The notes beneath the pieces are model-generated. The model was given only the letters and a program-made list of their open reading frames with translations. It was not told the DNA's origin and made no database searches. A program made the position numbers and the translations under genes. Shown in pieces: positions 3,861 through 63,330 of a DNA stretch of 64,000 bases. Origin of the DNA: Scyliorhinus canicula (Eukaryota); NCBI RefSeq assembly GCF_902713615.1, contig NW_024055665.1:62001-126000 (forward strand), written 5' to 3'. Numbering within the stretch: position 1 is the stretch's first letter; each line of letters starts with the position of its first letter.

Positions 3861-4276
3861 CACCTGAAGCCTAGCTATCCTGTTTCGGTATCAATATTTC
3901 TAATTATGAAGCTCAAGGTCGAGTTTGCTTTGCCAATTACTCTCTCGCTATGTCTTGTAGATGTACAAAATCTCTCTTCGCCTCTTTCTCTCTCCTCCCA
4001 AACAGGCCAGTTGGGTTTTTATGACAATCCACCAGCTCTCATGGTCACTTTTTCCCAGAGCCGGCCCCACAAATGACCAGCTTCATTCAGCTCAATTTCA
4101 CAACCTGCCTTTGTGTTTTTGTGGGTTCTCTCTCACTCCCTATTTTCTGTTTTAAATCAGTTTCACAGGGTGTTCGAAGGGGAGGATTCAAAGTCTGGAA
4201 ACTCAAACCAAGCATCACATCAGGATCTGACAGAGCCCTCAATTCATCAAATCCTGAATATCTGCGGATTTTGAAC

Positions 4277-5572
4277 ATGGAAGAAAAAAGTATCGTTCAC
4301 AGTGGGGAGAAATCGTACACGTGTCGTGTGTGTGGACGAGGATTCAGTCGATCATCGGTCCTCAAAAGCCACAAATGCAGTCACACTGAGGAGAAACAGT
4401 GGAAATGTGCGGACTGTGGGAAAGGATGTACTTACCCATCCAGGCTGGAAATTCATCGGCGCAGTCACACTGGAGAGAGACCATTCACCTGCTTCAAGTG
4501 TGGGAAGGGATTCACTCAGTTATCCCACTTGCACAAACACCAGCGTATTCACATTGGGGTGAGACCATTCACCTGCTCCAAGTGTGGGAAAGGATTCACT
4601 CAGCCATCCGCCCTACGCAAACACCAGCGAATTCATGTTGGGGAGAGACCATTCACCTGCTCCAAGTGTGGGAAAGGATTCACTCAGCCATCCGCCCTAC
4701 GCAAACACCAGCGAGTTCACACTGATGAGAGACCTTTTCAATGTCCAGATTGCGGGAAGTGCTACAGATGTTCTGCGGAACTGCTGATCCATCAACGTGT
4801 TCACACTGACGAGAAACCATTCCGGTGCTCTCACTGTGGGACTGGGTTCACACGATCATTTTACCTCACTGTACATCAGCGAATTCACACTGCGGAGAGG
4901 CCGTTCATCTGCTCCCAATGTGGGAAGGGATTCACTCAGTCATCCAACCTGCTGTCACACCAGCGAATTCACACTGGGAAGAGGCCATTCACCTGCTCTC
5001 AGTGTGGGAAGGGATTCGCTCAGTCATCCACTCTGCGGAACCACCAGCGAATTCACACTGGGGAGAGGCCATTCACCTGCTCTCAGTGTGGGAAGGGATT
5101 CACTCAGTCATCGGCCCTGCGCAAACACCAGCGAATTCACATTGGGGGGAGGCCATTCACCTGTTCTTGGTGTCGGATGGGATTCCCTCAGTCATCTGAC
5201 CTGGAGAAGCACCAGCGAATTCACACTGGGGGGAGGCCATTCACCTGCTCCAAGTGTGGGAAAGGATTCACTCGGTCATCCGACCTGGAGAAACACCAGC
5301 AAGTTCACACTGGGGAGAAACCATTCACCTGCTCCTGGTGTGAGAAGGGATTCACTCAGTCATCAGCCCTGCGGAGACACCAGAGAATTCACACTGGGAA
5401 GAGGCCATTCACCTGCTCCTGGTGTGGGAAGGGATTCATTGATTCATCCGACCTGCAGAGGCACCAGCCAGTTCACACTGGAGAGAGGCCATTCACCTGC
5501 CACAAGTGTGGGACGGGATTCACTCACTTATCCACCCTGCAGAGGCACCAGCGAGTTCACACTGGAGAGTGA
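4277..5572 (+). CDS. C2H2 zinc-finger protein with 15 tandem fingers and no KRAB domain (about 431 aa from the MEEKS ATG)
   Basis: ORF 4073-5572 holds 15 C-x2-C-x12-H-x3-H units with TGERPF-type linkers. An acceptor TTTCACAG ends at 4168, so the likely start is the ATG at 4277. Stop is TGA at 5570-5572. Confidence 0.9.
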
Positions 5573-7700: not shown

Positions 7701-8180
7701 CACGCTGGGTAGAGACCATTACCCTGCCTTGAGTGTGGAAAGAGATTCACTCACTCTGCCCACCTCACTTCACACCAACGTGTTCACTCTGACACGAGAC
7801 CTTTTAAATGTTCCACCTGTGAGAAGAGTTTCAAAGGTAAAATGGATCTGCTGATTCACCAACGCAGTCACACTGGAGAGAGGCCGTTCACCTGCTCAGT
7901 GTGTGGGAAGGGATTCGCACAGCATTCCCTCCGGCTGAAACACCAGCGCATTCAGCGCAGTGAGGGAGTGTTGATCTGTTCCCAACGTGGGAAGGGATTC
8001 ATTTGGGCATCTACCCTGCAGACACACCAGCGAGTTCACAAGTGCCTCCAGGACTCTGCTGTTATTGATGTTAATCACATCCAGGACTGAACCTAAATCA
8101 CATCCAGGACTGAACCATGTTCATTCTGTCAGATGGAGTTTGTTTGAGTTGATGTTAATAATCCCAGAAACAGATTAGAA
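7697..8180 (+). pseudogene. Zinc-finger exon relic 1
   Basis: [32 protein letters not shown] followed by broken fingers, frameshifts upstream, and a ZNF-type 3' UTR. Confidence 0.8.
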
Positions 8181-8254
8181 TAGACTGGTGCTTGATAGCC
8201 GGCACAGACACAAAGGGACAAAGGGCCTTGTTCTGTGCTTAAAACCCTATTACT

Positions 8255-8610
8255 CGAACCCATCTCACTTCACACCAACATGTTCACTCTGACACAAGAC
8301 ATTTTATGTGTTCTGACTGTGAGAAGAGCTTTAGAAGCAAAATGAATCTGCTGACTCACCAACAGTGCTCACACTGGAGAGAGACCATTCAGTGCTCCGA
8401 GAGTGGGAAGAGATTCTCTCATTCATTCACCCTGCAGATACACCAGCGATTTCACAAGTTACAGGAGTTGGATTCTGCTGTTATTGCTGCTGTGAGTCAC
8501 ATCCAGGACTGAACCATGTTCATTCTGACAGTTGGAGTTTGTTTCTGTTGATGTTAATAATCCCTGTAACTGGAGTTTAATGTTCTGTATATAGATGAAT
8601 TAAATCAGCT
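8255..8610 (+). pseudogene. Zinc-finger exon relic 2, paralogous to relic 1
   Basis: CTCACTTCACACCAACATGTTCACTCTGACAC matches about 7765-7795. Degenerate fingers CSDCEKSFRSKMNLLTHQ with a frameshift; ATTAAA near 8598. Confidence 0.75.
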
Positions 8611-23170: not shown

Positions 23171-23179
23171 TCACTCGAT
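23171..23179 (-). CDS. IGHM: IgM heavy chain TM2 exon (ATC GAG TGA = I-E-stop)
   Basis: Strong acceptor TTCTTTTATCTCTCGTACAG 124 nt downstream of the TM1 donor, in phase 0, with AATAAA after it. Confidence 0.75.
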   Translation of the reverse strand: ME

Positions 23180-23303: not shown

Positions 23304-23431
23304 CTTCACCAGAGTCACTGCAGTGCTATAGAATATGCTGAAGACAAACAGAGTGATAAATGCGGAAGCGGTTGTCCCGATATTACCATTATCATCCCCA
23401 TCGTCTTCAATCCAGATGTGGCCTCTAATGT
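23304..23431 (-). CDS. IGHM: IgM heavy chain TM1 exon
   Basis: (D)IRGHIWIEDDGDDNGNIGTTASAFITLFVFSIFYSTAVTLVK: acidic spacer plus Ig TM motif (F..LF..S.FYS..VT). Acceptor CCGTAG, donor GTGAGA; phase fits the internal Cmu4 donor. Confidence 0.92.
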
Positions 23432-29548: not shown

Positions 29549-29940
29549 TCAGTGACATGAATTAACGGTGTCCATCAGAGCGAGGGAAATGTTCACAAAA
29601 CTGGGTTTACCGCTGGATTTATCAACCGTTCTGTTGATGATCTTCAAGGGGATGGCTTCATGTCCCACCACACAGGAGTAAGAAGCGCCGCTGGCCCACT
29701 CCTCCGCTGCAATGGATAACAGGCTGTACATGAAGAAGGAGCTATTGCCGTTCTCCGCCATCACCTCGGTGTTCTTGTAGTTCCCGGGATTCACCGGCTT
29801 GTCATTGACGGTCCACTTGACGAAGATCTCTCGGGGGGAGAAACCTCTCACTAAGCAGCTGAGGGAGACGAATCTCTGGGCGGAGACGTCTTCAGCCGAG
29901 GGCAGGAGGACAGAGACGGACGGTTCCCGCGGGTTGGGAT
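29549..29940 (-). CDS. IGHM: IgM Cmu4 exon plus secretory tailpiece (membrane-form donor after 29611)
   Basis: (D)[42 protein letters not shown]...[23 protein letters not shown], then [21 protein letters not shown]1-set Cys/Trp, tailpiece N-I-S sequon and penultimate Cys; internal G|GTAAAC donor. Confidence 0.97.
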
Positions 29941-35554: not shown

Positions 35555-35863
35555 CTTCTTCTTTGTGGATGGATTTTTTTAAGGGCGTTGGCAGATCCTG
35601 GTGGCTCGCCACACAGTCAAACACAGCCCCACTCAGCCAGGCTTGTGTCGAGATGTTTAATTTGCTCACCACACTCCCAGTATCTGCCCCAGGCTGTTCA
35701 GCAATCTCTGATTTCAGCGGCTTCTTCGCTTCACTCCAGGACACGTTGACTCCATAAGGAGTATTCGAAATGATGCAGGTTAAGGTTACAGTCGCCTCCA
35801 GTAAGACCTGTTCTATTGACGGAGGCAGTATTTTTACTGAGACATCAGTGCAAGGGGCAGGCT
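35555..35863 (-). CDS. IGHM: IgM Cmu3 exon
   Basis: (E)[42 protein letters not shown]...[22 protein letters not shown]; 309 nt, phase 1/1, acceptor TTCACAG and donor GTGAG. Confidence 0.96.
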
Positions 35864-37733: not shown

Positions 37734-38048
37734 CTTCAGATGTGCCGATATTCCGACTTTGTGTGAGCCCTTTATGAGTGACCTGGCAGGTATAGACCGC
37801 TTTGCTGAACCATTCCCCAGCGGAGACTGTCAGCCGACTGCTCGCCGAGAAGTTCTCGTTCACTTCACAGGCGGGAGAGGTGAGAATTCCTGAACCCATG
37901 GGTTGTCCATTCTTCAACCACTTCACCGCCATTGACTTTGGACGGAAATCGATGATTGAACAGACGATGGTTGCAAATTTAGTGCGTGTGATTTCTTCAT
38001 TGGAACTCACAGTGAGGAGAAGATTTGGAGGTTTGTCATTTTTACGAC
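37734..38048 (-). CDS. IGHM: IgM Cmu2 exon
   Basis: (C)[47 protein letters not shown]...[21 protein letters not shown]; 315 nt, phase 1/1. Confidence 0.96.
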
Positions 38049-38258: not shown

Positions 38259-38558
38259 ATGTCATTCCAATGCTCTTGTCTGAGCCGTTGTGTCGAACCT
38301 CACAGCTGATTTTGCTGCATGCCCCCTCTGACTCAGGGATGGTTAACTGGCTGCTCAGGGTGTAGGTTCCCTTTATGTTTCTCACTGCCGGATAAGTCTT
38401 CAATCCAGTGGTGATCGGCTGCCCATCTTTCTTCCAGGTAAGGCTGCTGATTTCTGGGGAGTAGTCCATCGCCAAACAGCCGTAGGTCACGGAGCCGTCG
38501 GTGTTGTGTTGCTGACAGGAGGGGGCCAGGTTGTAGAGAGTGGGTTGAGACGGCGTCG
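38259..38558 (-). CDS. IGHM: IgM Cmu1 exon
   Basis: (A)[45 protein letters not shown]...[17 protein letters not shown]; 300 nt, acceptor TTTTCCAG, donor GTAAGT. The early Cys fits the light-chain linkage. Confidence 0.96.
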
Positions 38559-38649
38559 CTGGAAAAGAAAGACGGATTGAACATGTCAGATCCAATTGTT
38601 TGCTTTTAATTCGTAACCAAACAACTTAAAATTAGGTTATAGTTATACA

Positions 38650-38886
38650 TTTATTCAATTTTTAAAAATAAATTTAGATTACCCACTTCATTTTTTCCAC
38701 ATGAGGGGCAATTTAGCGTGGCCAATCCACCTTCCCTGAACATTTTTGGGTTGTGGGGGTGACACCCACGCCAACACGGGGAGAATGTGTAAACTCCACA
38801 CGGGCAGTGACCCAGAGCCGGAATCGAATCGGGGACCTCGGCGACGTGAGGCAGCAATGCTAACTCCTGTGCCACCGTGCTGCCCT
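38650..38886 (-). mobile_element. HE1-like SINE
   Basis: Head GGGCAGCACGGTGGCACAGGAGTTAGCATTGC on the minus strand. Confidence 0.8.
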
Positions 38887-40064
38887 ATTCCATTATTTTG
38901 ACAGTAATCTGTACATCCGCATTTGAGTTTCCATCAGTACCATTATGAATTGTTCTTCCCATGTTCACTTTCTCTGCCTCTGACACAATTTTTAAAATGT
39001 TGATTTTAGCTGAATGACGTCGACTTCGTTAGATTAAAATAGAAGAGCAGAACATTTTCCAAATATTGCAACTACCATTTCAAAAATATTTACATTTTCG
39101 TGAAGAACAAAGTGTTTTCTCGTCGTCAGGTTGTTGCACTGGAAACTGGCCTTATTGAAATTTGCCACTCCAGCCCCATGGCCCTCACAAAATAATAACT
39201 CCGATTCAAACGGTGCTTGGCAGGGAGTGCTTATAAAATAGCCCTACAACTCTAAACCTGAGTACAAGATAAAGTAATTCCAACATTTTCTAATCATGAC
39301 CTGCAGTGCCCTTGGAGCTAAAGTGGGTTGTGAGACCAAATGTAAAACACCTTCAAATAATTCCAGTCTTGCAGAAAATGAAGGCCATGATTCCGAAAGG
39401 TGCATTCTGACCATGAGGTTGCTTTCTCGAGCAACTTCGGAACATTGAATCGTCGATTTTCTTCAGATCTTGTTTGCTGTGGAGAAACTCACTTAACTCC
39501 CCAAATATTTTATATTTCAGTATTAAATATTTTAGAGTTAGACTGTTCCACATTTTGTCCATTGGACACCTCCTACATACATTTACTACCAGCCTCCTGA
39601 CATCTGCACAGGATTCTCCCATTCTTGATATTACATTTCATCCGTCATTCCATTTTAAAAGCTGCCTTAAACCTTCCTCTTGGACAAAGCTTGTGGGGAA
39701 CTGCCATAACTTCTCATTATATGACTCGGGGTAGGTCATCTCTTGTAAAGGTCGAGGAAAATGTTTGGGGCGTCGCACTACATTGCAGTGGTCATACAAT
39801 TGCAGCTCACTATTGAATTTAGAGGATTTAAAAAAAATTTTTGGATCGGTTTACTTTTCTTCATTATAGATGTTACTTATAGTCATACAAGTTATCACAT
39901 GTTTAAAACAAATCACTGCATGCTCTTTAAGAATAACAGCATTATAAATTATGAAATATAATGTCTGGGGAAAAAAGCTATTCAGTTGATCATGACTTTG
40001 ATCTTCCTTTCAAAAGTTCAATTTTACCAAACTATTACGCATTCCACTGAGTCATCTTTGTCTA

Positions 40065-41510
40065 CATGAATAGTGCCAGAAGACTGGGAAGATAGCAAAT
40101 GTTGTTGCCTTGTTCAAGGAGGGGAGTAGAGACAACCTCGGTAACTATAGACCAGTGAGCCTTACTTCTGTTGTGGGCAAAGTCTTGGAAAGTTTTATAA
40201 GAGATAGGATGTATAATAATCTGGAAAGGAATAATTTGATTAGAGATAGTCAACACGGTTTTCTGAAGGGTAGGTCGTGCCTCACAAACCGTATTGAGTT
40301 CTTTGAGAAAGTGACCAAACAGGTGGATGAGGGTAAAGCAGTTGATGTGGTGTATATGGATTTCAGTAAAGCGTTTGATAAGGTTCCCCACTGTAGGCTA
40401 TTGCAGAAAATACGGCGGCATGGGATTCAGGGTGATTTAGCAGTATGGATCAGAAAATGGCTAGCTGTAAGAAGACAAAGGGTGGTGGTTTATGGGAAAT
40501 GTTCAGACTGTAGTCCAGTTACTAGTGGTGTACCACAAGGATCTGTTTTGGGGCCACTGCCGTTTGTCATTTTATAAATTACCTGGAGGAGGTCGTAGAA
40601 GGATGGGTGAGTAAATTTGCAGATGCCACTAAAGTCGGTGGTGTAGTGGACAGTGCGGAAGGATGTTACAAGTTACCGAGGGACATAGATAAGCTGCAGA
40701 GCTGGGCTGAGAGATGGCAACTGGAGCTTAATGCATAAACGTGTGAGGTGATTCATTTTGGAAGGAAAAACAGGAAGACAGAATACTGGGCTAATGGGAA
40801 GATTCTTGGTAGTGTGGATGAGCAGAGAGATCTCGGTGTCCATGTACATAAATCCCTGAAAGTTGCCACCCAGGTTGAGAGGGTTGTTCAGAAGACGTGC
40901 GGTGTGTTAGCTTTCATTGGTAGAGGGGTTGAGTTTCGGAGCCATGAGGTCAAGTTGCAGCTGTACAAAACTCTGGTGCGGCCGCATTTGGATATTGCGT
41001 GCAATTCTGGTCGCTGCATTATAGGAAGGATGTGGAAGCATTGGAAAGGGTGCAGAGGAGATTCACCATAATGTTGCCTGGTATGGAGGGATCTTATGAG
41101 GGAAGGCTGAGGGACTTGAGGCTGATTTCGTTAGAGAGAAGAAGATTAAGAGGTGACTTAATTGAGGCACACAAGATGATCAGAGGATTAGAAAGGATGC
41201 ACAGTGAGAGCCTTTTTCCTGGGCTGGTGGTGTGCAGCACGAGGGAACATAGCTTTAAATTGAGGGGAGATAGATATAGGACAGATGTTAAAGGTAGGTT
41301 CTTTACTCAGAGAGTAGTAAGGGCGTGGAATGGCCTGCCTGCAACAATAGTGGATTCGCCAACGCTAAGGGCATTCAAATGGTCATTGGATAGACGTATG
41401 GATGATAAGGGAATAGTGTACATGGGCATTAGAGGGGTTTCACAGCTCGTCGCAACATTGTGGGGCGAAGGGCCTGTACTGCACTGTAATGTTCTATCTA
41501 TCTATGTATC
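40065..41510 (+). mobile_element. 5'-truncated CR1-type LINE in the J-C intron
   Basis: GNYRPVSLTSVVGKVLE, QHGFLKGRSCLTN, YMDFSKAFDKVPH and SGVPQGSVLGP, with an ATCT-type tail. Confidence 0.9.
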
Positions 41511-44500
41511 TACTTTTTGACAGGCCATATCCGGTCCTAACAACCAAGCGTTTATAAATTGCAATCCTTTCTCCCTTAAATGTTTCCATGTTTATTTAAA
41601 CAAAATATATTTTATAGACCAACATCTGATTTGGGGAAATAACTTCTTGAATTCCAGTAAGAAGAAACCCTTTCTGTTGTACAAAACACCTCCACCAGAT
41701 TTCATCCTAATTTTCTTTGTTCTCATGACAGTAATGGATATTTGAAATAACTGGTCGATGACTCCTTTCACATATAAATGTACATTTGACATTGGCGTTG
41801 CGAGGGATAATTTTACAAACGTTAATACCTGGAACTGAATTTTTGTGTGAATAGTCATTTAATCTAGTTTATCTATTTCCTTCTGAAAAAGAGTTGTGCT
41901 CTCCCATACATTCTCTACACAGATCTACTGAATGTCTATCTCAAGTTTGGTCGCCCCGCACCCCAGCCCGACAACTCAATTAATACTACTAATTGAGCAC
42001 AATTCCATGCGTTGAAAATATAAAACGCCATTGTTTAAATAGTCTATTTCATTTAGCAATCTAACTTCCTAAGTTCTACCTCTTATTTATTTTACCAGCT
42101 GTTTCTGTTTGATCACAGGACAGACATTTTGTGTATACATCAACGCTTGCACTCATTAAACGTCATAATTCGAGTAGATGTCAATGGGTTACATAGATAA
42201 AAGAACGGAATCATCTAGTCTGTTGATATGATCAACTCGCACTTCTGTTTTGTGGCTGATTCAGATACCTGAGTTATTCGGAAATAACACTCTACAGTAT
42301 GGAATATCAAGGATTACTAATTTTTGTCACGGTGGAGAATTAGAGGGATGCACATTGACAACGTTTTTGAAAGCAGCAGGAAAGGTTGTTAAGGTGGCTT
42401 GAAAAGCGAATGGAAGACTTGGTCTTGTAAATAGGAGCCCCGACAAGGAGAAATTCATGATGACGTTTTTCAAGCACTCACCAGGCTGCGCTATCTTCTG
42501 AAAACTTCTGACCACCACTTTAGGGAAATGGTCAAGTCCCTGTGGAGAATACGGAGAGGATGTACTAAGGTGATATCACGTGTGGGAGAGTTCAATATTA
42601 TAGAGAGGTTACACCAGCTAACTTGTTCACGTTCTAACCGTGTGTCTTATGGGTTTATTGGAGAGATATGTTCAAAATGATGAGATATTGTTAATATAAT
42701 AGTTGAGGAGAAAATGTTTCTGCTGGTTATCAAAAGGAAACAATTGACAAAATAATTAGGAAATTTAGGGTGATGCAGAACGTGTTTTGCTCCAGTCAGA
42801 AGGTGTTGACTTTGGAATTATAGAGTGGTTACTGCAAATGAGAAGATCATCCAGATCATTGTGTCTGCCCCGGTTCGCTGCATCTGGAATGAATAAAGTG
42901 ATTTGATATGTCAATTAATTAACAGATTTACGAGTTGTGGGTCCAAATTGGAACTATTTTAGAGTCAAAATGGGCATAATGAGCCGAATTACTCAGTTAT
43001 CTACGACATAATTCTACCAGTCTGTAGGACTCATTGGACACATTCTTTCTCATTTGATGGGAGAAAATGTTTAATACTCCCTTGCAGCTCTTTGATATCA
43101 TTATATTGTTTGGAATAATGGAAACTTACGTTAAAATAAAGGGATCTGATTAATCTGAGGTAACTGAGTCAATCGAATGCACACAAGGAATTAGGTTTAT
43201 GATGAAACAGCCGATTTCAGACTAAATGCAGCACTTGAAATATGTGACAGAAATGTAGTTTTGTGGCTTTATACTCTGTATGGTGGCCCAGTGGGATACT
43301 TGCACCTCGATCCTGTTACTTTTGTCAGTGAACAATTTCAAAGAATAGAATGAAATAATAATTTGAACCAAAAGTTTCTTATGTTGGTTATTTGGCATGG
43401 GCGTCTAATCATTCTCTATTTCGGGAGTGAAAATAACTTGCAGCTTCCTATCAGACCAGAACAGACGCCGCTCGCTGGAGCATTGCTCTCACTTCCTGAA
43501 AGTATTATAAAACCGCGTTCAAAGTCAGGTCGCTCTCATGGAATGATTATTTGGTACTCAAATGCCTAAACATAATTAATTCAGTAAAATGCATGCATGT
43601 TCATTTTTTAGAAAGATTGTTAAAATCAATTAAAGTGCATTAGTTCACAGGAGTAACGGGAGAATTTGTGTTTACGAACATACTTATTGAGATTGAAGCT
43701 GATTAAATGTGTTTAATGATGTGGGGAGATGACGTTCAGGTCAGGCACAGGACAATTATGAAGTTATGACCTCTCCTGACTCTCCTGCCTCTGAATACCC
43801 TCCCGCCCCAAGTCCTGTCTCTCCGCCTCCTTCCACCACCAAACCCCCAACTCCCGGAGTAACTCAACAATTTTATATCAAAGCCGACCATCATCTAGAG
43901 AAGACACAAAGGGGGACAACTATTGAATAAATTCCATATGCCTCTATGAATGCCAATCCAACAACATTCAATAAATTCGACGATGTCAAGAACAATGTCG
44001 CCAGCAAAATTCGCACCACACCCACCACCTTAAAAACTCACTCTCTCTACCTCCGGTGCACAGTGTCCCTTACAACAACGACTCGACAAAGCTCCTTCCC
44101 AACCCACGTCCCTCCACCAGCTGAAAGTGGAATGGCTCCCACTGACGATAGTGTAACCTTCAGTTCTCCTTGAATACACAATTATCATGATTTGAACTAT
44201 ATAATCATTTCTTTACTCTTACCTGGGGATAATCATGCAATTCGCTTCCTAACATTACTTTGAGTGTACTGACACACATTGTTTCAGCGGTTTAAGAATG
44301 CGACTCCTCCAGGTGCTCCGGGGTTCCACCATAGTCCAACCATGTGCAGGCTAGGTGGGGCTACGGTGTTAGGGGGATAAGTCGCGTAGTCGGCCGAGGT
44401 AACGTGCCCTTTAAGAGGGTAACTACACTTTCGATGGTCCGAATGGCCTTCTTTTGCACTGAAAGGATTCCATAGACTCTATAGGATTCAACGACACTTT

Positions 44501-45054
44501 CTGAAACTAAACTAGAAAACTGCAAAAAATGCTGGCCTTGCCATGTAATCTTAGATCAATATGAAAATCGCTTACTGTCACGAGTAGGCTTCAATTAACT
44601 TACTGCGAAAAGCCCCTAGTCGCCACATTCCGGCGCCTTTAATTGGAGGCTGGTAGGGAATTGAACCGTGCTGCTGGCCTGCCTTGGTCTGCTTTAAAAG
44701 CCAGCGATTTAGCCCAGTGTGCTAAACCAGCCCTCTGTATACTTTTTCATGCCGTCTGTTCACTCCTTCTGCACCATCTCATTCAGAGAACATTAGGAGC
44801 AAAAGTTAAATGTAGAGTAAAATTCACTTCAAATTGCCTAATTCAACAGTCCCAATATTACTGGTTACAAATCGAACTAAACTCTTTTGCTAGGCTGTCG
44901 ATTGTGTGTGATTTTCCCGGTCTGTCAGGAGTCCGATTTCTGATGCATACAATTAAATATGAAGTCAAACTTTCACATTGATCATGCATACTTTTTGAAG
45001 AAATTAATCCGATTGCACGCCTTGAAAAACAGGAGAAGGAAGCGGAAGGTTTAC

Positions 45055-45120
45055 AACCAGTCAGCAAGGTTCCTGGTACAACACAGTGACCAGGCGCATG
45101 GAACTGAACAGACACAAGCA
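45055..45120 (-). other. Cryptic 23-bp-spacer RSS followed by a short J-like stretch
   Basis: CACAGTG at 45082-45088, exactly 23 nt of spacer, then ACACAAGCA (6/9 to ACAAAAACC). The minus-strand flank reads VPGTLLTG then T|GTAAAC. Confidence 0.25.
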
Positions 45121-45594
45121 GTGCTACAACCGAGTTTCCAGCAGATAAATACGTTCAGTCTGTCAATTTCATTCAAACGGTGTGATTCTATTTGATCAAT
45201 GATCCATTACCACAATAATAACGCCTTTGACATTCAGTCTTGAAAAAACAAAGATTTAGTTTCCCTGAATATGAGCATATCAAGCTTTGCAGATTAGGGA
45301 TAATTTGATGTTCTTAAAAGACACGCAGTGACAGGGGAAGCAACACACAAACCGGGAAGCATTCATATTCAAAACTCATTCTCCACAGGTTTGACATAAC
45401 AATTTCGTAATGGAATGTAGCTAACAAAGAAATCAAGGCAAAGCTCCTTACCGAGCATCTTACAGTTGACGAAATATATGTGTTGTTTTCTCAATTCATT
45501 TTGGATGCAATTAAACATTCTTCCTAACCGTTGAGATCTGAGACTGGTTTTTCCCATCCAAGAGAAGCGTTTGCTCGGTGCCGCACCGCTCGTT

Positions 45595-45715
45595 GGCGGG
45601 GGGATTCTCCCCTCCTGCCACTTGCCAATAGGATTTTCCATTTAAGCCACCCCACTCCGTCGGGAAAGCCGCCGGAGGGGGTGCGCCGCCGGCGGGAAGA
45701 GTGAATCCTAACGGC
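45595..45715. mobile_element. Short MITE-like element
   Basis: GGCGGGGGGATTCTCC ... GGGAAGAGTGAATCC imperfect terminal inverted repeats; the left end resembles the 12814 element. Confidence 0.5.
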
Positions 45716-46199
45716 CGGGGCCATGAGCTCACTGAAATTACTCAGTTGTAGGAGATCACATGTGTGTAGAATAAGTTCGAGTTATTATGGTTACAGTTAA
45801 TTTGCTTGTTAACAGATTTGTACTCAATAATAAAAAATAATTTTGACATTTCAAAATATGTTTCTGCCTAATACTTTGTGAAATAATTGGGGTAAACTGA
45901 ATTAGTATGGCACTTAACCTATGTTACGTAATACAAATAAAATTAACAGAGGGAAATATTGAGACATATATGTCATTTTATTTAAATCTAATCACATTTT
46001 AAGAATTTAAAATGGGCAATACCTATAACTGCCCTTTTTACCGACAAACATGTAAACACTAAAATATTCGTAAAGACGTTCATGTATTATAACCTCAATT
46101 AATCCTCTGTAAGTGGTTTACATGATGCATTTGAGTGGAATATTTTAAGTAGTTCCTAATTTTGAGTGGGCCACTTCGCACGGTCGGTTTATGGGCTGT

Positions 46200-46760
46200 A
46201 ATATCAGCTGGTTGGCAAAACAAGACTCTCATATTTAAATATTGTCGTAAATCGTAACTATATATATTATTACAGGAGTGAATATTTAAAAAATGTCTGT
46301 GTTATAACCTACAGGCAGCAACTTTATTGATCAGAAACTGCCAGGGCCTATATATATCCGCAGTTTGTGAGCGGTAACGGTACTACCTGGATTTAATAAC
46401 TCGGGCAATTTTTCAAAAATACACCTGCAATTCACACAATTGCCGGAAATATGTTAATAAATATATTATTAATTCGAGAAGAGCCAAACTGAAGCATCTA
46501 AATCTTGGGAACAATTCATTCAGAACGTTTGCGAGAAAGTAAGGCGCAATTTCCTTGTTCAATGTAATATTTAGTAAAGAACTAACCATAAAGGTCAGAT
46601 ATAATCAGTATTTCAGCTCTGATTCTTTCCTGTGTGCAGCACAGTTATAGGAGACGGTATTGATTTCAGGTTCGATGCTACTGGCAGACTTTTGATTTAA
46701 AATAATTCGCTCACTTTCCTGTTTTATTTGCAAATCTCTAGCCATATGCAAATACACCAA
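46200..46760. promoter_or_regulatory. Candidate intronic enhancer (octamer, E-box and Ets cluster in an AT-rich tract)
   Basis: ATGCAAAT at 46746-46753, ATTTGCAAAT at 46726-46735, TTCCTG at 46716-46721, CACCTG at 46422-46427 and CAGCTG at 46205-46210. Confidence 0.4.
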
Positions 46761-47574
46761 CTATTTAACCATCATTATTAACAATTCCTTCACAAAACCG
46801 TTTAGGATTAGGTTAATTATAATTACCTCACTGTCAAAGTACAAATAAAATTGATGGGATAATATAGTTGCGGCTGCACACAAATAATATCATAACCGGA
46901 TGCATATATTGCCAAAATGCAATATAAAACTCCTATGTAAGTAAATGCGAACGTTCATTTATCTGTTTTAGCCTGGGATATAACAATTACTTCAAAATGG
47001 CTTGTGAAACTGAACACTGATTGGAATCAGAATGTCTTATTGAAATATTTGCAGGGATAATAAAAAAAATACTTACAACTTGAAGTTTTCCGTTCATGTT
47101 GTTTGTGCCCAGTACACAGCAGCATTGTGAAAGGGGATTGATGATAATGATATTAATTTAACCGCACCTTTATTCAATACGGAGAGATATTGGCTCATTC
47201 TAGCTGTTTGAATGACATTCATTTTACTCTCCATTTGGTGAACTTGTTAATTAAATAGTTTGTGACCACAGTTACAAAATATGTTCTGAGCGAGCATCAT
47301 AAACCCTGTCTTTATTTAAACTGCAATTATCACAATTTTTAAAAATGCACCAACATATCTGAAAATGTTAATTTTTCATTTTAACGTCTGCCTGTTTTCT
47401 GCCTACAATCGTGCTTGAAGTATTTCATGCAATCAGTTAACGTTTAACCGCGCAATCTCACGGAGTTGAAACAATGCATGAGCAAGTCAGAAACGCAAAA
47501 TGTTTCCACAAATTTTACTTATTCAAAGTAACGCAGTCACATCTTCTCCACCGTAGAAAAATACCAAATCACGT

Positions 47575-47878
47575 CAATAATAATCTTTATTGTCACAAGT
47601 AGGCTTACATTAGCACTGCATTTAAGTTACTGTGAAAAGCCCGGAGTCGCCACACTCCGGCGCCTGTTTGGGTACAGAGGGGGAGAATTCAGAATGTCCA
47701 CATTACCTAACAGCATGTCTTTCGGGACTTGTGCGAGGAAACCGGACCACTCGGAGGAAACCCACGCAGACACAGGGAGAACGTGCACTCCACACAGACA
47801 GTGACCCAAGCAGGGACTCTAACCTGGGACCCTGGAGCTGTGAAGCAATAGTGCTAACCAATGTGCTACCGTGCGCTG
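47575..47878 (-). mobile_element. SINE about 200 bp downstream of JH
   Basis: Core GGAGGAAACCCACGCAGACACAGGGAGAACGTGC, with head GCACGGTAGCACATTGGTTAGCAC on the minus strand. Confidence 0.8.
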
Positions 47879-48081
47879 AAACACGTTTCATGGAGACGCA
47901 GCTGTTTTTCTTCTATTATGCATATTTTTCCAACCAAAACAAATGCCTGGTACAATTAAAATTCAACATGGAATTCAAGGAGCCCGCTCGCCAACAAACT
48001 ATTTAATTCGGAACATAACCAGAAAATTGGAATAATGGCAACAACTTTGTGAGTAGGCATAAATAAATGCAAGAATCTGAC

Positions 48082-48447
48082 CTGCCGTCACTGTCACCAT
48101 GGTGCCTTGTCCCCAGTATTCGCCACCCCAGTATTTTGTAGGCTGCCATGAACAGTAATAGATGGCGATGTCTTTGGTCTTCAGATTCCGTATGTCCAAA
48201 GCGAAGATGTTCTTCGTAAGGTCTTTGGACGCAGTAAATCGGTTCTCAATCCCTGGGGCGTAGTAATTGTTGGATGCAGTATAATAGTAAAGCAACCACT
48301 GTAAACCCTGTCCGGGGACGAATCGGACCCAATGAAGGCTGAAGCCGCCTACGCGGAACCCGCTGGCTTTGCAAGTCAGTCTCAGGGAGCCTCCGGGACG
48401 CCCGGTCTCTGCCTCCGGCTGAGTCAACACAACCTGCGACTGGACAC
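48082..48447 (-). CDS. IGHV: Pre-joined VH-D-JH exon (germline-joined VDJ)
   Basis: (R)[121 protein letters not shown]. One 366-nt exon with no heptamer or nonamer between FR3 and WGQG; phase-1 donor GTCAGA. Confidence 0.97.
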
Positions 48448-48575
48448 CTGTAAAAATATATCAAAAAGCCCGAGGATTAATGCTGGTGAAATGATTGGTG
48501 ACTCTGGAACATTCCAGAGAGAGACTAACACTGAGACAGTAACAGTGAGAGACTTGGACAATAAAAATTACTCAC

Positions 48576-48621
48576 GGGATAAGAAAGTCAGCAACAAACT
48601 GAGAGAAATGGCCCACCTCAT
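48576..48621 (-). CDS. IGHV: VH leader exon
   Basis: MRWAISLSLLLTFLS plus C|GTGAG; a 128-nt intron joins it to the V exon to give ...FLSRVQS. Confidence 0.95.
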
Positions 48622-48712
48622 CCTTCTGGCCATTTGGGGGAAATGGTTGTGTCAGGAACTCAGTGAACAAACCAGCTCCCGGACTGTTGGATTCGGGTCC
48701 CAGTGAGCGGCA

Positions 48713-48795
48713 TTTAAATACCCGGCAGAAGGGGGCGGCTTTCCAGGCGCCGCCTGTTGATTCCCTGGTGGAGGCGGCGACTGGATCCACGTCCC
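48713..48795 (-). promoter_or_regulatory. VH promoter (TATA-like box, GC box, palindrome; no octamer)
   Basis: TATTTAAA at 48713-48720 about 92 nt upstream of the ATG, GGGGGCGG at about 48731-48738, CAGGCG-C-CGCCTG at 48744-48756 and an ACGT core at 48789-48792. Confidence 0.6.
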
Positions 48796-49529
48796 GCCTT
48801 CCACACCCCCAACAGAATGGACTCAGAGATTTACTATAGGGTTATTATTAAAACTGACATTTTATCTGTATCGGAATATTTATTTGTCTGAATTGATTCG
48901 TTGTAATACCTCTCCTCTTCCTAATGGCAAAATTACATCTGAATATTTGGTTATAAAAACTAATTCCATTGTAAATTAAGCCCCTTTATTTCTACACTCC
49001 AATATAAGGGAGTGAACATAAACAGATTCAATGATAGTATCAGGGAACGAATCGTCTGTCAGTCTGATTTCGACCACTTTGGGTCTCTTTCCCATTACAA
49101 CAATAAAGTATTATCTACCAGAGGAATTGTTATCGGTTTCTGTAACCAAATGACGGGATGAACAAAGTGATTGTATTTCCCGTGTGGGTGCCTATCACTG
49201 TACAATGTGGGACTGTGGGTAAGAGGAATTCTCACATTATACAATATTTCTCCTGACATTTCACGAAATTCTCTTGAGATTGAGACAGTCCTGTAAATAT
49301 TAGCGGGAAAAGAACTCCGTTTTCCCCGTTATCGCATTGTGAGTGGACAGAGAAACATAAAATTGACATCAGCATTGGACAGAAAAATTAATGAATCAGA
49401 AGGGATCCGGCGATCAGCAAAGTTCTCCTTCAGCATCCAAATAATTGCAGCTAGTTTGTATTGGCCACCGGCTGTCTAACATTCACTAGTGTTGGGAACA
49501 CAGGATATTGGGACTTTGCGGAATATAAC

Positions 49530-61554: not shown

Positions 61555-63330
61555 ATAAGAACATTAGAACTAGGAGCAGGAGTAGGCCATCTGGCCCCTC
61601 GAGCCTGCTCCACCATTCAATGAGATCATGGCTGTTTTTTTGTGGACTCAGCTCCACTTTCCGGCCCGAACACCATAACCCTTAATCGCGTTATTCTTCA
61701 AAAGCTATCTATCTTTATCTTTAAAATATTCAATGAAGGAGCCTCAACTGCTTCACTGGGCAAGGAATTCCATAGGTTCACAACCCTTTGGGTGAAGAAG
61801 TTCCCCCGAAACTCAGTCCTAAATCTACTTCCCCTTATTTGGAGGCAATGCCCCCTAGTTCTGATTTCACCCACCAGCGGAAACAACCTGTCCGCATCTA
61901 TCCTATCTATTCACTTCATGATGTTAAATGTTTCTATAAGATCTCACCTCATCCTTCTAAATTCCAACGAGTATAGTCCCAGTCTACTCAACCTCTCCTC
62001 ATAATCCAACCCCTTCAACTCTGGGATTAACCTAGTGAATCTCCTCTGCACACCCTCCAGTGCCAGTACGTCCTTTCTCAAGTAAGGAGACCAACACTGA
62101 ACACAATATTCCAGGTTTGGCCTCACTAACACCTTATACAATTGCAGCATAACCTCCCTAGTCTTAAACTCCATCCCTCCAGCAATGAAGGACAAAATTC
62201 AATTTGCCTTCTTAATCACCTGTTGCACCTGTAAACCAGCTTTCTGTGATTCATGCACTAGCACACCCAGGTCTCTATGCACAGCAGCATGCTTTAATAT
62301 TTTATCGTTTAAATAATAATCCCGTTTGCTGTTATTCCTACCAAAATGGATAACCTCACATTTGTCAACATTGTATTCCATCTGCCAGACCCTAGCCCAA
62401 TCACTTAACCTACCCAAATCCCTCTGCAGACTTCGAGTATCCTCTGCCCTTTTCGCTTTACCACTCATCTTAGTGTCATCTGCAAACCTGGACACATTGC
62501 CCTTGGTCCCCAACTCCAAATCATCTATGCAAATAGTGAACAATTGTGGGCCCAACACGGAACCCTGAGGGACACCACTAGCCACTGATTGCCAACCAGA
62601 GAAACACCCATTAATCCCCACTCATTGCTTTCTATTAATTAACCAATCCTCTATCCATCCTACTACTTTACCCTTAATGCCATGCATATTTATCTTATGC
62701 AGCAACCTTTTGTGTGGCACCTTGTCAAGGGCTTTCTTGAAATCCAGATATACCACATCCATTGGCTCCCCGTTATCTACTGCACTGGTAATGTCCTCAA
62801 AAAATTCCACTAAATTAGTTAGGCACGACCTGCCCTTTATGCACCCATGCTGCGGCTGTCCAATGGGACAATTTCTATCCAGATGCCTCGCTATTTCTTC
62901 CTTGATGATCGATTCCAGCATCTTCCCTACTACCGAAGTTAACCTCACTGGCCTATAATTTCCCGCTCTCTGCCTACCTCCTTTTTTAAACAGTGGTGTC
63001 ACGTTTGCTAATTTCCAATCCACCAGGACCACCCAGAGTCTAGTGAATTTTGGTAAATCATCACTAGTGCATCTGCAATTTCCCTAGCCATCTCTTTTAG
63101 CACTCTGGGATGCATTCCATCAGGGCCAGGAGACGTGTCTACCTTTAGCCCCATTATCTTGCCCATCACTACCTCCTTAGTGATAACAATCCTCTCAAGG
63201 TCCTCACCTGTCATAGCCTCATTTCTATCAGTCCCAGGCATGTTATTTGTGTCTTCCACTGTGAAGACCGACCCAAAAAACCTGTTCAGTTACTCAGCCA
63301 TTTCCCCATCTCCCATTATTAAAATAGGAA
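61555..63330 (-). mobile_element. 5'-truncated CR1-type LINE
   Basis: PGPDGMHPRVLKE, NYRPVRLTSVVGKMLE, SGVPQGSVLGPQLF, SRFADDTK and VRPNLEYCVQCWSP. Confidence 0.92.

Follow-up and report, generated by a model that had tools for sequence, protein, structure and literature searches.

The 64-kb stretch of DNA analysed here (the window) carries on its minus strand an IgM heavy-chain gene whose V, D and J elements lie contiguously in one open exon free of recombination signal sequences (RSS), the arrangement of an elasmobranch germline-joined IgH cluster. The exon has its own leader, J-C intron and constant exons with no other V, D or J nearby, so that the locus stands as a mini-cluster in its own right. 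We consider it very probable that this is a complete, stand-alone IgM mini-cluster with an inherited VDJ that has been kept for a function, most likely that of a pre-formed innate-like antibody. Germline-joined immunoglobulin genes are a textbook phenomenon in cartilaginous fish. Our literature search found no published description of joined IgM genes in catsharks, and the gene thus appears to be undescribed in print while being of a kind ordinary for sharks.

The fused V-D-J exon (48082-48447, minus strand, as for every exon and intron of the gene) is 366 nt long, comprises 121 in-frame codons and is open from end to end. It encodes an entire heavy-chain variable domain, made up of FR1 to FR3 as far as DIAIYYC, a CDR3 of 12 residues (48116-48151) and a J-derived part (48082-48115) of 11 residues plus the first base of the following codon, and it matches the Pfam V-set with an E value of 1.7e-14. 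The 3' end of the exon is a phase-1 splice donor (G|GTCAG, with the GT at 48081). No heptamer or nonamer recombination signal adjoins the exon and there is no spacer DNA between V, D and J. The original prediction, made from the letters alone, had described V, CDR3 and J as running together in one open exon without RSS or spacer, and its coordinates, CDR3 and J sequence are all correct. It had also reported no other V, D or J segment upstream; a tblastn search with the V domain returned only the domain itself, with no second V-like match in the whole 64-kb window, and the J core motif occurs there a single time.

On the 5' side, the leader exon (48576-48621, 46 nt) starts with an ATG at 48621 and encodes MRWAISLSLLLTFLS plus the first base of the following codon, its GT donor lying after 48576. 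The leader intron (48448-48575) is 128 nt long and of GT..AG type, with the acceptor AG before 48447. A TATA-like box, TATTTAAA, is located at 48713-48720 (minus strand), 99 nt 5' of the ATG and within a stretch of multi-copy depth common to many VH genes, while no octamer ATGCAAAT is present within 680 nt 5' of the gene. On the 3' side the J-C intron (38559-48081) measures 9,523 nt and holds SINE-like and LINE reverse-transcriptase fragments. Part of its 9.5-kb length is accounted for by one of these, a LINE-type reverse-transcriptase fragment at 40074-41517 on the plus strand, antisense to the gene; another LINE-type reverse-transcriptase fragment lies at 62202-63289 (minus strand). Both introns had been expected to be retained, the second at 9.5 kb, and the presence of both excludes a retrocopy, as had been argued from the outset.

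The constant region is that of a canonical four-domain IgM. The Cmu1 exon (38259-38558) has retained the cysteine (APSCQQ) where conventional IgM is linked to its light chain, the Cmu2 exon (37734-38048) is open with intact AG/GT sites and a C1-set match at E 1.2e-18, and the Cmu3 exon (35555-35863) is likewise a C1-set exon. The Cmu4 exon (29549-29940) continues into a secretory tail of 20 residues and a stop, and contains an internal GGTAAA donor after 29611 for the membrane form. The tail is conventional, with an NIS glycosylation site and a penultimate cysteine, and AATAAA signals lie 29 and 39 nt beyond the secretory-form stop. A motif scan located the TM1 exon (23304-23431), which reads …NIGTTASAFITLFVFSIFYSTAVTLVK, and the TM2 exon (23171-23179) adds I, E and the stop, with an AATAAA 63 nt downstream; the nurse-shark membrane-probe primers of PMC2435157 have no match in the window. 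All introns of the gene are GT-AG, all splice junctions from leader to TM1 are in phase 1, and the predicted spliced secreted form is 575 aa long, has no internal stop and contains every domain cysteine. With one V-set domain, four C1-set domains, a secretory tail and TM exons reached through the internal Cmu4 donor, the predicted product has the composition of a mu chain. The complete gene forms a solitary mini-cluster of ~25.5 kb flanked by zinc-finger genes and retroelements. Downstream of it, long open frames encoding tandem C2H2 zinc fingers are found at 4025-5569 and 7713-8509 (plus strand).

The closest constant regions are those of Scyliorhinus models, with identities of 98% for Cmu4 (to an S. 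torazame Cmu model), 85-86% for Cmu1 and 84-85% for Cmu3, and the leader peptide is the same as that of the S. canicula model P0047. The window would on these grounds belong to a catshark of Scyliorhinus type. In a phmmer comparison with TM1, conventional shark membrane IgM reads NIWTTASTFITLFFLS…TLVKVK where this gene reads NIGTTASAFITLFVFS…TLVKIE. Because the S. torazame Cmu models P0024 and P0032 have the KIE tail as well, it would be a trait common to several catshark IgM genes and not peculiar to this one. Two further changes in the membrane segment, NIW to NIG and TAST to TASA, are found in this gene alone among the compared sequences.

A join of this kind might in principle have entered the assembly from a lymphocyte clone in which V, D and J had been somatically rearranged, the true germline locus being split. 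Rearranged B cells do occur in shark blood and lymphoid tissue, and the DNA runs carry no statement of the tissue sampled. Public sequencing runs were therefore examined for sampled 31-mers of the 118-nt stretch from FR3 through CDR3 to J (48083-48200), and contigs were placed on 47880-49100 of the window to test the join. Every sampled junction 31-mer is present in 11 samples from seven studies of the same organism, including two DNA samples that differ in year and study. In DNA sample S2 (run X5), one contig runs unbroken over 47880-48404, through J-C intron, J, CDR3 and V, at a word depth of 13.7 as against 12.3 for the unique upstream flank. In DNA sample S1 (run X2) the J-C intron is heterozygous, with SNPs at 48058 and 48073 and allele depths of 3.6 and 3.3, and the contigs of both intron alleles carry on into J; the junction contig has a depth of 5.2 compared to 7.4 for the flank. 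A layout of unjoined V-RSS-D-D-RSS-J in non-lymphoid DNA had been set as the finding that would overturn the prediction, and the public reads instead gave the joined layout in both DNA samples.

The same join exists in a second species. A single contig from run X14 spans 47880-48401 with 25 substitutions and no indel (95% identity), and the reads are presumably DNA, since the intron is covered as well as the exon at a depth of 50. The V-D-J exon is thereby covered together with the J-C intron by DNA contigs from two samples and by the second species, a related one; orthologous joined clusters in related sharks had been proposed as a check. Since the join is the same and free of indels in both, it is older than their divergence. 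A clonal lymphocyte rearrangement could neither be present on both alleles at full diploid dosage nor recur in 11 samples, and is for practical purposes ruled out; with the second species differing at the join by substitutions only, we assign somatic capture a vanishingly small probability. Single-copy dosage, two alleles, 11 samples and a second species agree in supporting an inherited V-D-J join, as originally predicted.

Germline-joined VDJ and VD-J heavy-chain clusters have been known from the horn shark since the 1980s (PMC2193156), and those of horn shark and skate were described by the Litman laboratory in the 1980s-90s (summarised in PMC2193156 and PMC5192425). The present gene resembles them in that an RSS-free V-D-J exon belongs to a V-(D)-J-C mini-cluster containing four Cmu exons. 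The process behind such joins was addressed for light chains by Lee et al. (2000), who found that joined genes arise through RAG-like recombination in germ cells and are stable in the population (PMC2193156). In the nurse shark NS4 light-chain genes, to which the germ-cell RAG-like model applies, the RSS have been removed completely, as here, and expression occurs mainly early in life (PMC2193156). Unlike this gene, NS4 genes encode light chains and have undergone no more than a VJ join. Near-identical split genes were at hand for comparison with their junctions and revealed P nucleotides and trimming, whereas none of the loci compared here is a split cluster of the same V lineage. Among candidate sources of its CDR3, the D segments of the C. 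punctatum cluster L002 are no close match, and clusters L004 and L006 are already VD(D)-joined. RAG action in a germ cell, the accepted model (PMC2193156), would by analogy account for the present join.

Divergence between the two species is distributed unevenly over the aligned region, with 14 differences in 202 intron nucleotides (6.9%) and 11 in 320 exon nucleotides (3.4%). By codon, seven of the exon differences are synonymous and four are replacements (pS 0.096, pN 0.016, pN/pS 0.17). By Fisher's exact test, replacement sites differ from synonymous sites at p=0.004 and from the intron at p=0.006, while the synonymous rate is close to the intron rate, with no difference between them. The test comprises 11 substitutions in one contig, and it provides good but not final evidence that the V-D-J exon has been under purifying selection since the species split. 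Reading frame and framework are kept in both species. Three of the four replacements fall in CDRs: R31S in CDR1 and K-to-T and Y-to-H in CDR3, the fourth being T77S in FR3. The CDR3 of the second species, SWQPTTHWGGEY, accordingly differs at two residues, and here the original prediction of one fixed specificity was too strong: the germline CDR3 is indeed inherited, but it has changed by two residues between the species.

The gene is transcribed and spliced from VDJ to Cmu1. In RNA run X12 the word depth is zero across both introns, and a contig of 389 nt matches 48082-48404 letter for letter before running on for 66 more. Comparison of 30 of these 66, those displayed past the VDJ end, found them identical to 38529-38558, the start of Cmu1 directly after the acceptor, although paralogous Cmu1 exons could carry the same letters. 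A further RNA contig joins 48573 to 48444, skipping the 128-nt leader intron; this contig belongs to a shared VH family and not solely to this gene. Searching RNA for the invariant CDR3 had been suggested as a check, and in addition to X12 the junction was found in probable-RNA runs from at least three further samples. The spliced VDJ-Cmu1 contig and the pN/pS of 0.17 together bear out the proposal of an inherited heavy chain in the form of an expressed gene.

Since the join predates the species split and the exon is under purifying selection, we conclude that the gene has been kept for a function. It might alternatively be a true germline join that has become a functionless relic, drifting slowly, with its transcripts arising as a by-product of the shared VH promoter. 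The unique VDJ contig of X12 has a depth of 23, about 2% of the 1116 of the shared leader contig (a rough measure only), and such a low level is what a by-product might give. Expression of the horn-shark joined heavy-chain genes was undetected and their significance has been doubted (PMC2193156), the WGxG motif in the J of the joined whale-shark gene L001 is damaged, and the gene under study carries unusual residues in V framework and membrane segment. A relic would nonetheless have had to retain an open frame in all eight exons, along with its poly(A) signals and canonical splice sites, to have kept its frame in two species with a pN/pS of 0.17 against synonymous divergence close to that of the intron, and to yield a transcript correctly spliced to Cmu1. 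We regard this explanation as quite improbable. The gene also differs from the horn-shark joined genes, of which expression was not detected, in that it combines a spliced transcript with conservation in two species and purifying selection.

The V domain itself is unusual. It is 63-69% identical to the best database VH sequences, and several framework positions depart from the common pattern: WVRQ has become WVRF (Q39F), GLEW has become GLQW (E46Q), TEDTA has become TKDIA, and CAR at the end of FR3 has become CSW. The codons for these residues are untouched by the 11 differences between the species. Together with the changes in the membrane segment, the altered framework could reflect an altered or relaxed function. 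G44, L45 and W47 are conventional, and with the retained Cmu1 cysteine they make pairing with a light chain likely.

The 5' end of the gene has a different character from the rest. The region 48405-48850, containing the first 14 V-exon codons, leader intron, leader and promoter, reaches ~35 times the depth of single-copy sequence in either DNA sample of the first organism and ~8 times in the second species, whereas the V exon beyond its first 14 codons is single-copy. The multi-copy contigs over this region differ from the window at only 2-4 positions, and the gene's own sequence here is 98-99% like the multi-copy consensus. The gene is thus a mosaic, in which promoter and leader are almost exactly those common to conventional VH genes and the body of the V is unique; the mosaic may have arisen by concerted evolution or conversion. 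We suggest that sharing promoter and leader with conventional VH genes is what allows the divergent V to keep B-cell expression.

The nurse-shark gene IgM1gj, reportedly the subject of work by Rumfelt et al. in 2001, was compared as a possible orthologue. It is the one well-studied expressed joined heavy chain, a neonatal chain without Cmu2 whose partner is a joined light chain (PMC5192425, PMC4279169). IgM1gj (P0036) and the present gene are alike in having a fully joined VDJ in an expressed IgM-type cluster with a divergent single-member V lineage, and their secretory tails are nearly identical. They differ in most other respects. IgM1gj has three C domains and lacks Cmu2, whereas here the Cmu2 exon is intact and four constant domains are predicted. 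V identity to IgM1gj is 62%, no better than to conventional VH, and the two genes have unrelated CDR3s. For Cmu1, identity is 57% to IgM1gj as against 72% to conventional nurse-shark IgM, and the cysteine motif SCQQ is kept where IgM1gj has FNQQ. In the V-region tree, which is unresolved, the gene stands alone on a long branch and does not group with IgM1gj, itself on a separate long branch. Orthology with IgM1gj was rejected on the values for V and Cmu1 and on the retention of Cmu2 and SCQQ, and the gene is best classed, from sequence comparison, as an independently joined, canonical four-domain IgM.

Joined clusters are also present in other sharks, as seen in a survey of a few loci fetched for comparison from four other shark genomes. 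Contiguous joined VDJs are found in whale shark (L001) and S. torazame (L005). A part-joined VD(D)-J cluster occurs in S. torazame as well (L004), and another in Mustelus asterias (L006). In these two (L004:5780-5900 and L006:10150-10240) a heptamer, 12-nt spacer and nonamer come after the fusion of V with D sequence, so that just one recombination is still needed. The whale-shark VDJ (L001:10180-10536, YYCARDWGGSLHYWGQETMVTVTA) has a J with WGQE instead of WGQG and may be a damaged joined gene. A C. punctatum model, P0021, joins V-D-J and Cmu1 straight to the membrane segment, skipping Cmu2-4, and may be a short membrane form or an annotation artefact. P0047 of S. canicula (CDR3 VRYTTMGGFDF) and P0032 of S. 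torazame (VRYTAMGGFDH) make up a second joined gene conserved in two catsharks. Like the joined and part-joined clusters above, this pair belongs to the same gene family as the gene described here, P0047 having the same leader peptide and P0032 the same KIE tail. Orthology with L001, L005 or P0047/P0032 was rejected, as the CDR3s differ and V identities are 57-68%, and their joins are independent of the one described here.

We propose the following route from gene to product. V, D and J would have been recombined once in the ancestral germ line and the fused exon inherited thereafter, so that no RAG step would be required for expression, which would be driven by a promoter and leader region almost letter-for-letter that of conventional VH genes. 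The transcript would be spliced L-VDJ-Cmu1, the VDJ-Cmu1 part being the one seen in RNA, and exons, splice sites and poly(A) signals point to an onward route through Cmu4 and then either into the secretory tail or, by way of the internal donor, to TM1 and TM2. CDR1, CDR2 and CDR3 of the resulting IgM chain would all be encoded in the germ line, and the chain would probably bind a light chain by way of the Cmu1 cysteine it has kept and polymerise through the tail cysteine. By analogy with nurse-shark IgM1gj, such a chain would most likely serve as a pre-formed innate-like antibody or B-cell receptor, acting before or independently of somatic rearrangement.

A functional gene need not encode an antibody of fixed specificity. 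The chain might instead be a developmental or surrogate heavy chain for RAG-free signalling, or the gene a template for hypermutation. Lee et al. proposed that rejoined immunoglobulin genes may evolve into receptors freed from rearrangement (PMC2193156), and a surrogate chain of this sort would fit a membrane segment and KIE cytoplasmic tail that depart from the usual KVK form, as well as the placement of three of the four interspecies replacements in CDRs. However, other catshark Cmu genes have the KIE tail too, the secretory tail is fully conventional in its cysteine and glycosylation site, and the bulk RNA contig is unmutated, though contigs mask rare variants. On balance we consider a surrogate or template role unlikely, and favour the pre-formed antibody.

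More speculatively, catsharks may possess several hard-wired IgM heavy chains of four domains, a small set conserved across species under selection on their germline CDRs and forming a RAG-independent repertoire of natural antibodies or early B-cell receptors that is distinct in origin and structure from IgM1gj. Its members would be the gene described here, P0047/P0032 and perhaps further genes with the KIE tail. We put this forward tentatively, as an idea with less than an even chance of being correct; if it is, selected germline-encoded antibodies would have arisen repeatedly in elasmobranchs.

Nowhere is the rewriting of an inherited genome by the V(D)J recombinase clearer than in germline-joined immunoglobulin genes, and whether these genes are useful has been argued since their discovery. 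To our knowledge, nurse-shark IgM1gj is the sole joined gene shown to have an abundant product. Reviews describe the nurse shark as having no canonical (four-domain) joined IgM. The gene described here would be a second hard-wired shark heavy chain kept by selection, and one of different structure, and offers a defined sequence, in a group of sharks that is bred in the laboratory, with which to approach questions of ligand, light-chain partner and timing. A canonical four-domain IgM with a fixed VDJ that is both spliced and selected supports the view that such joins can be co-opted and not merely tolerated.
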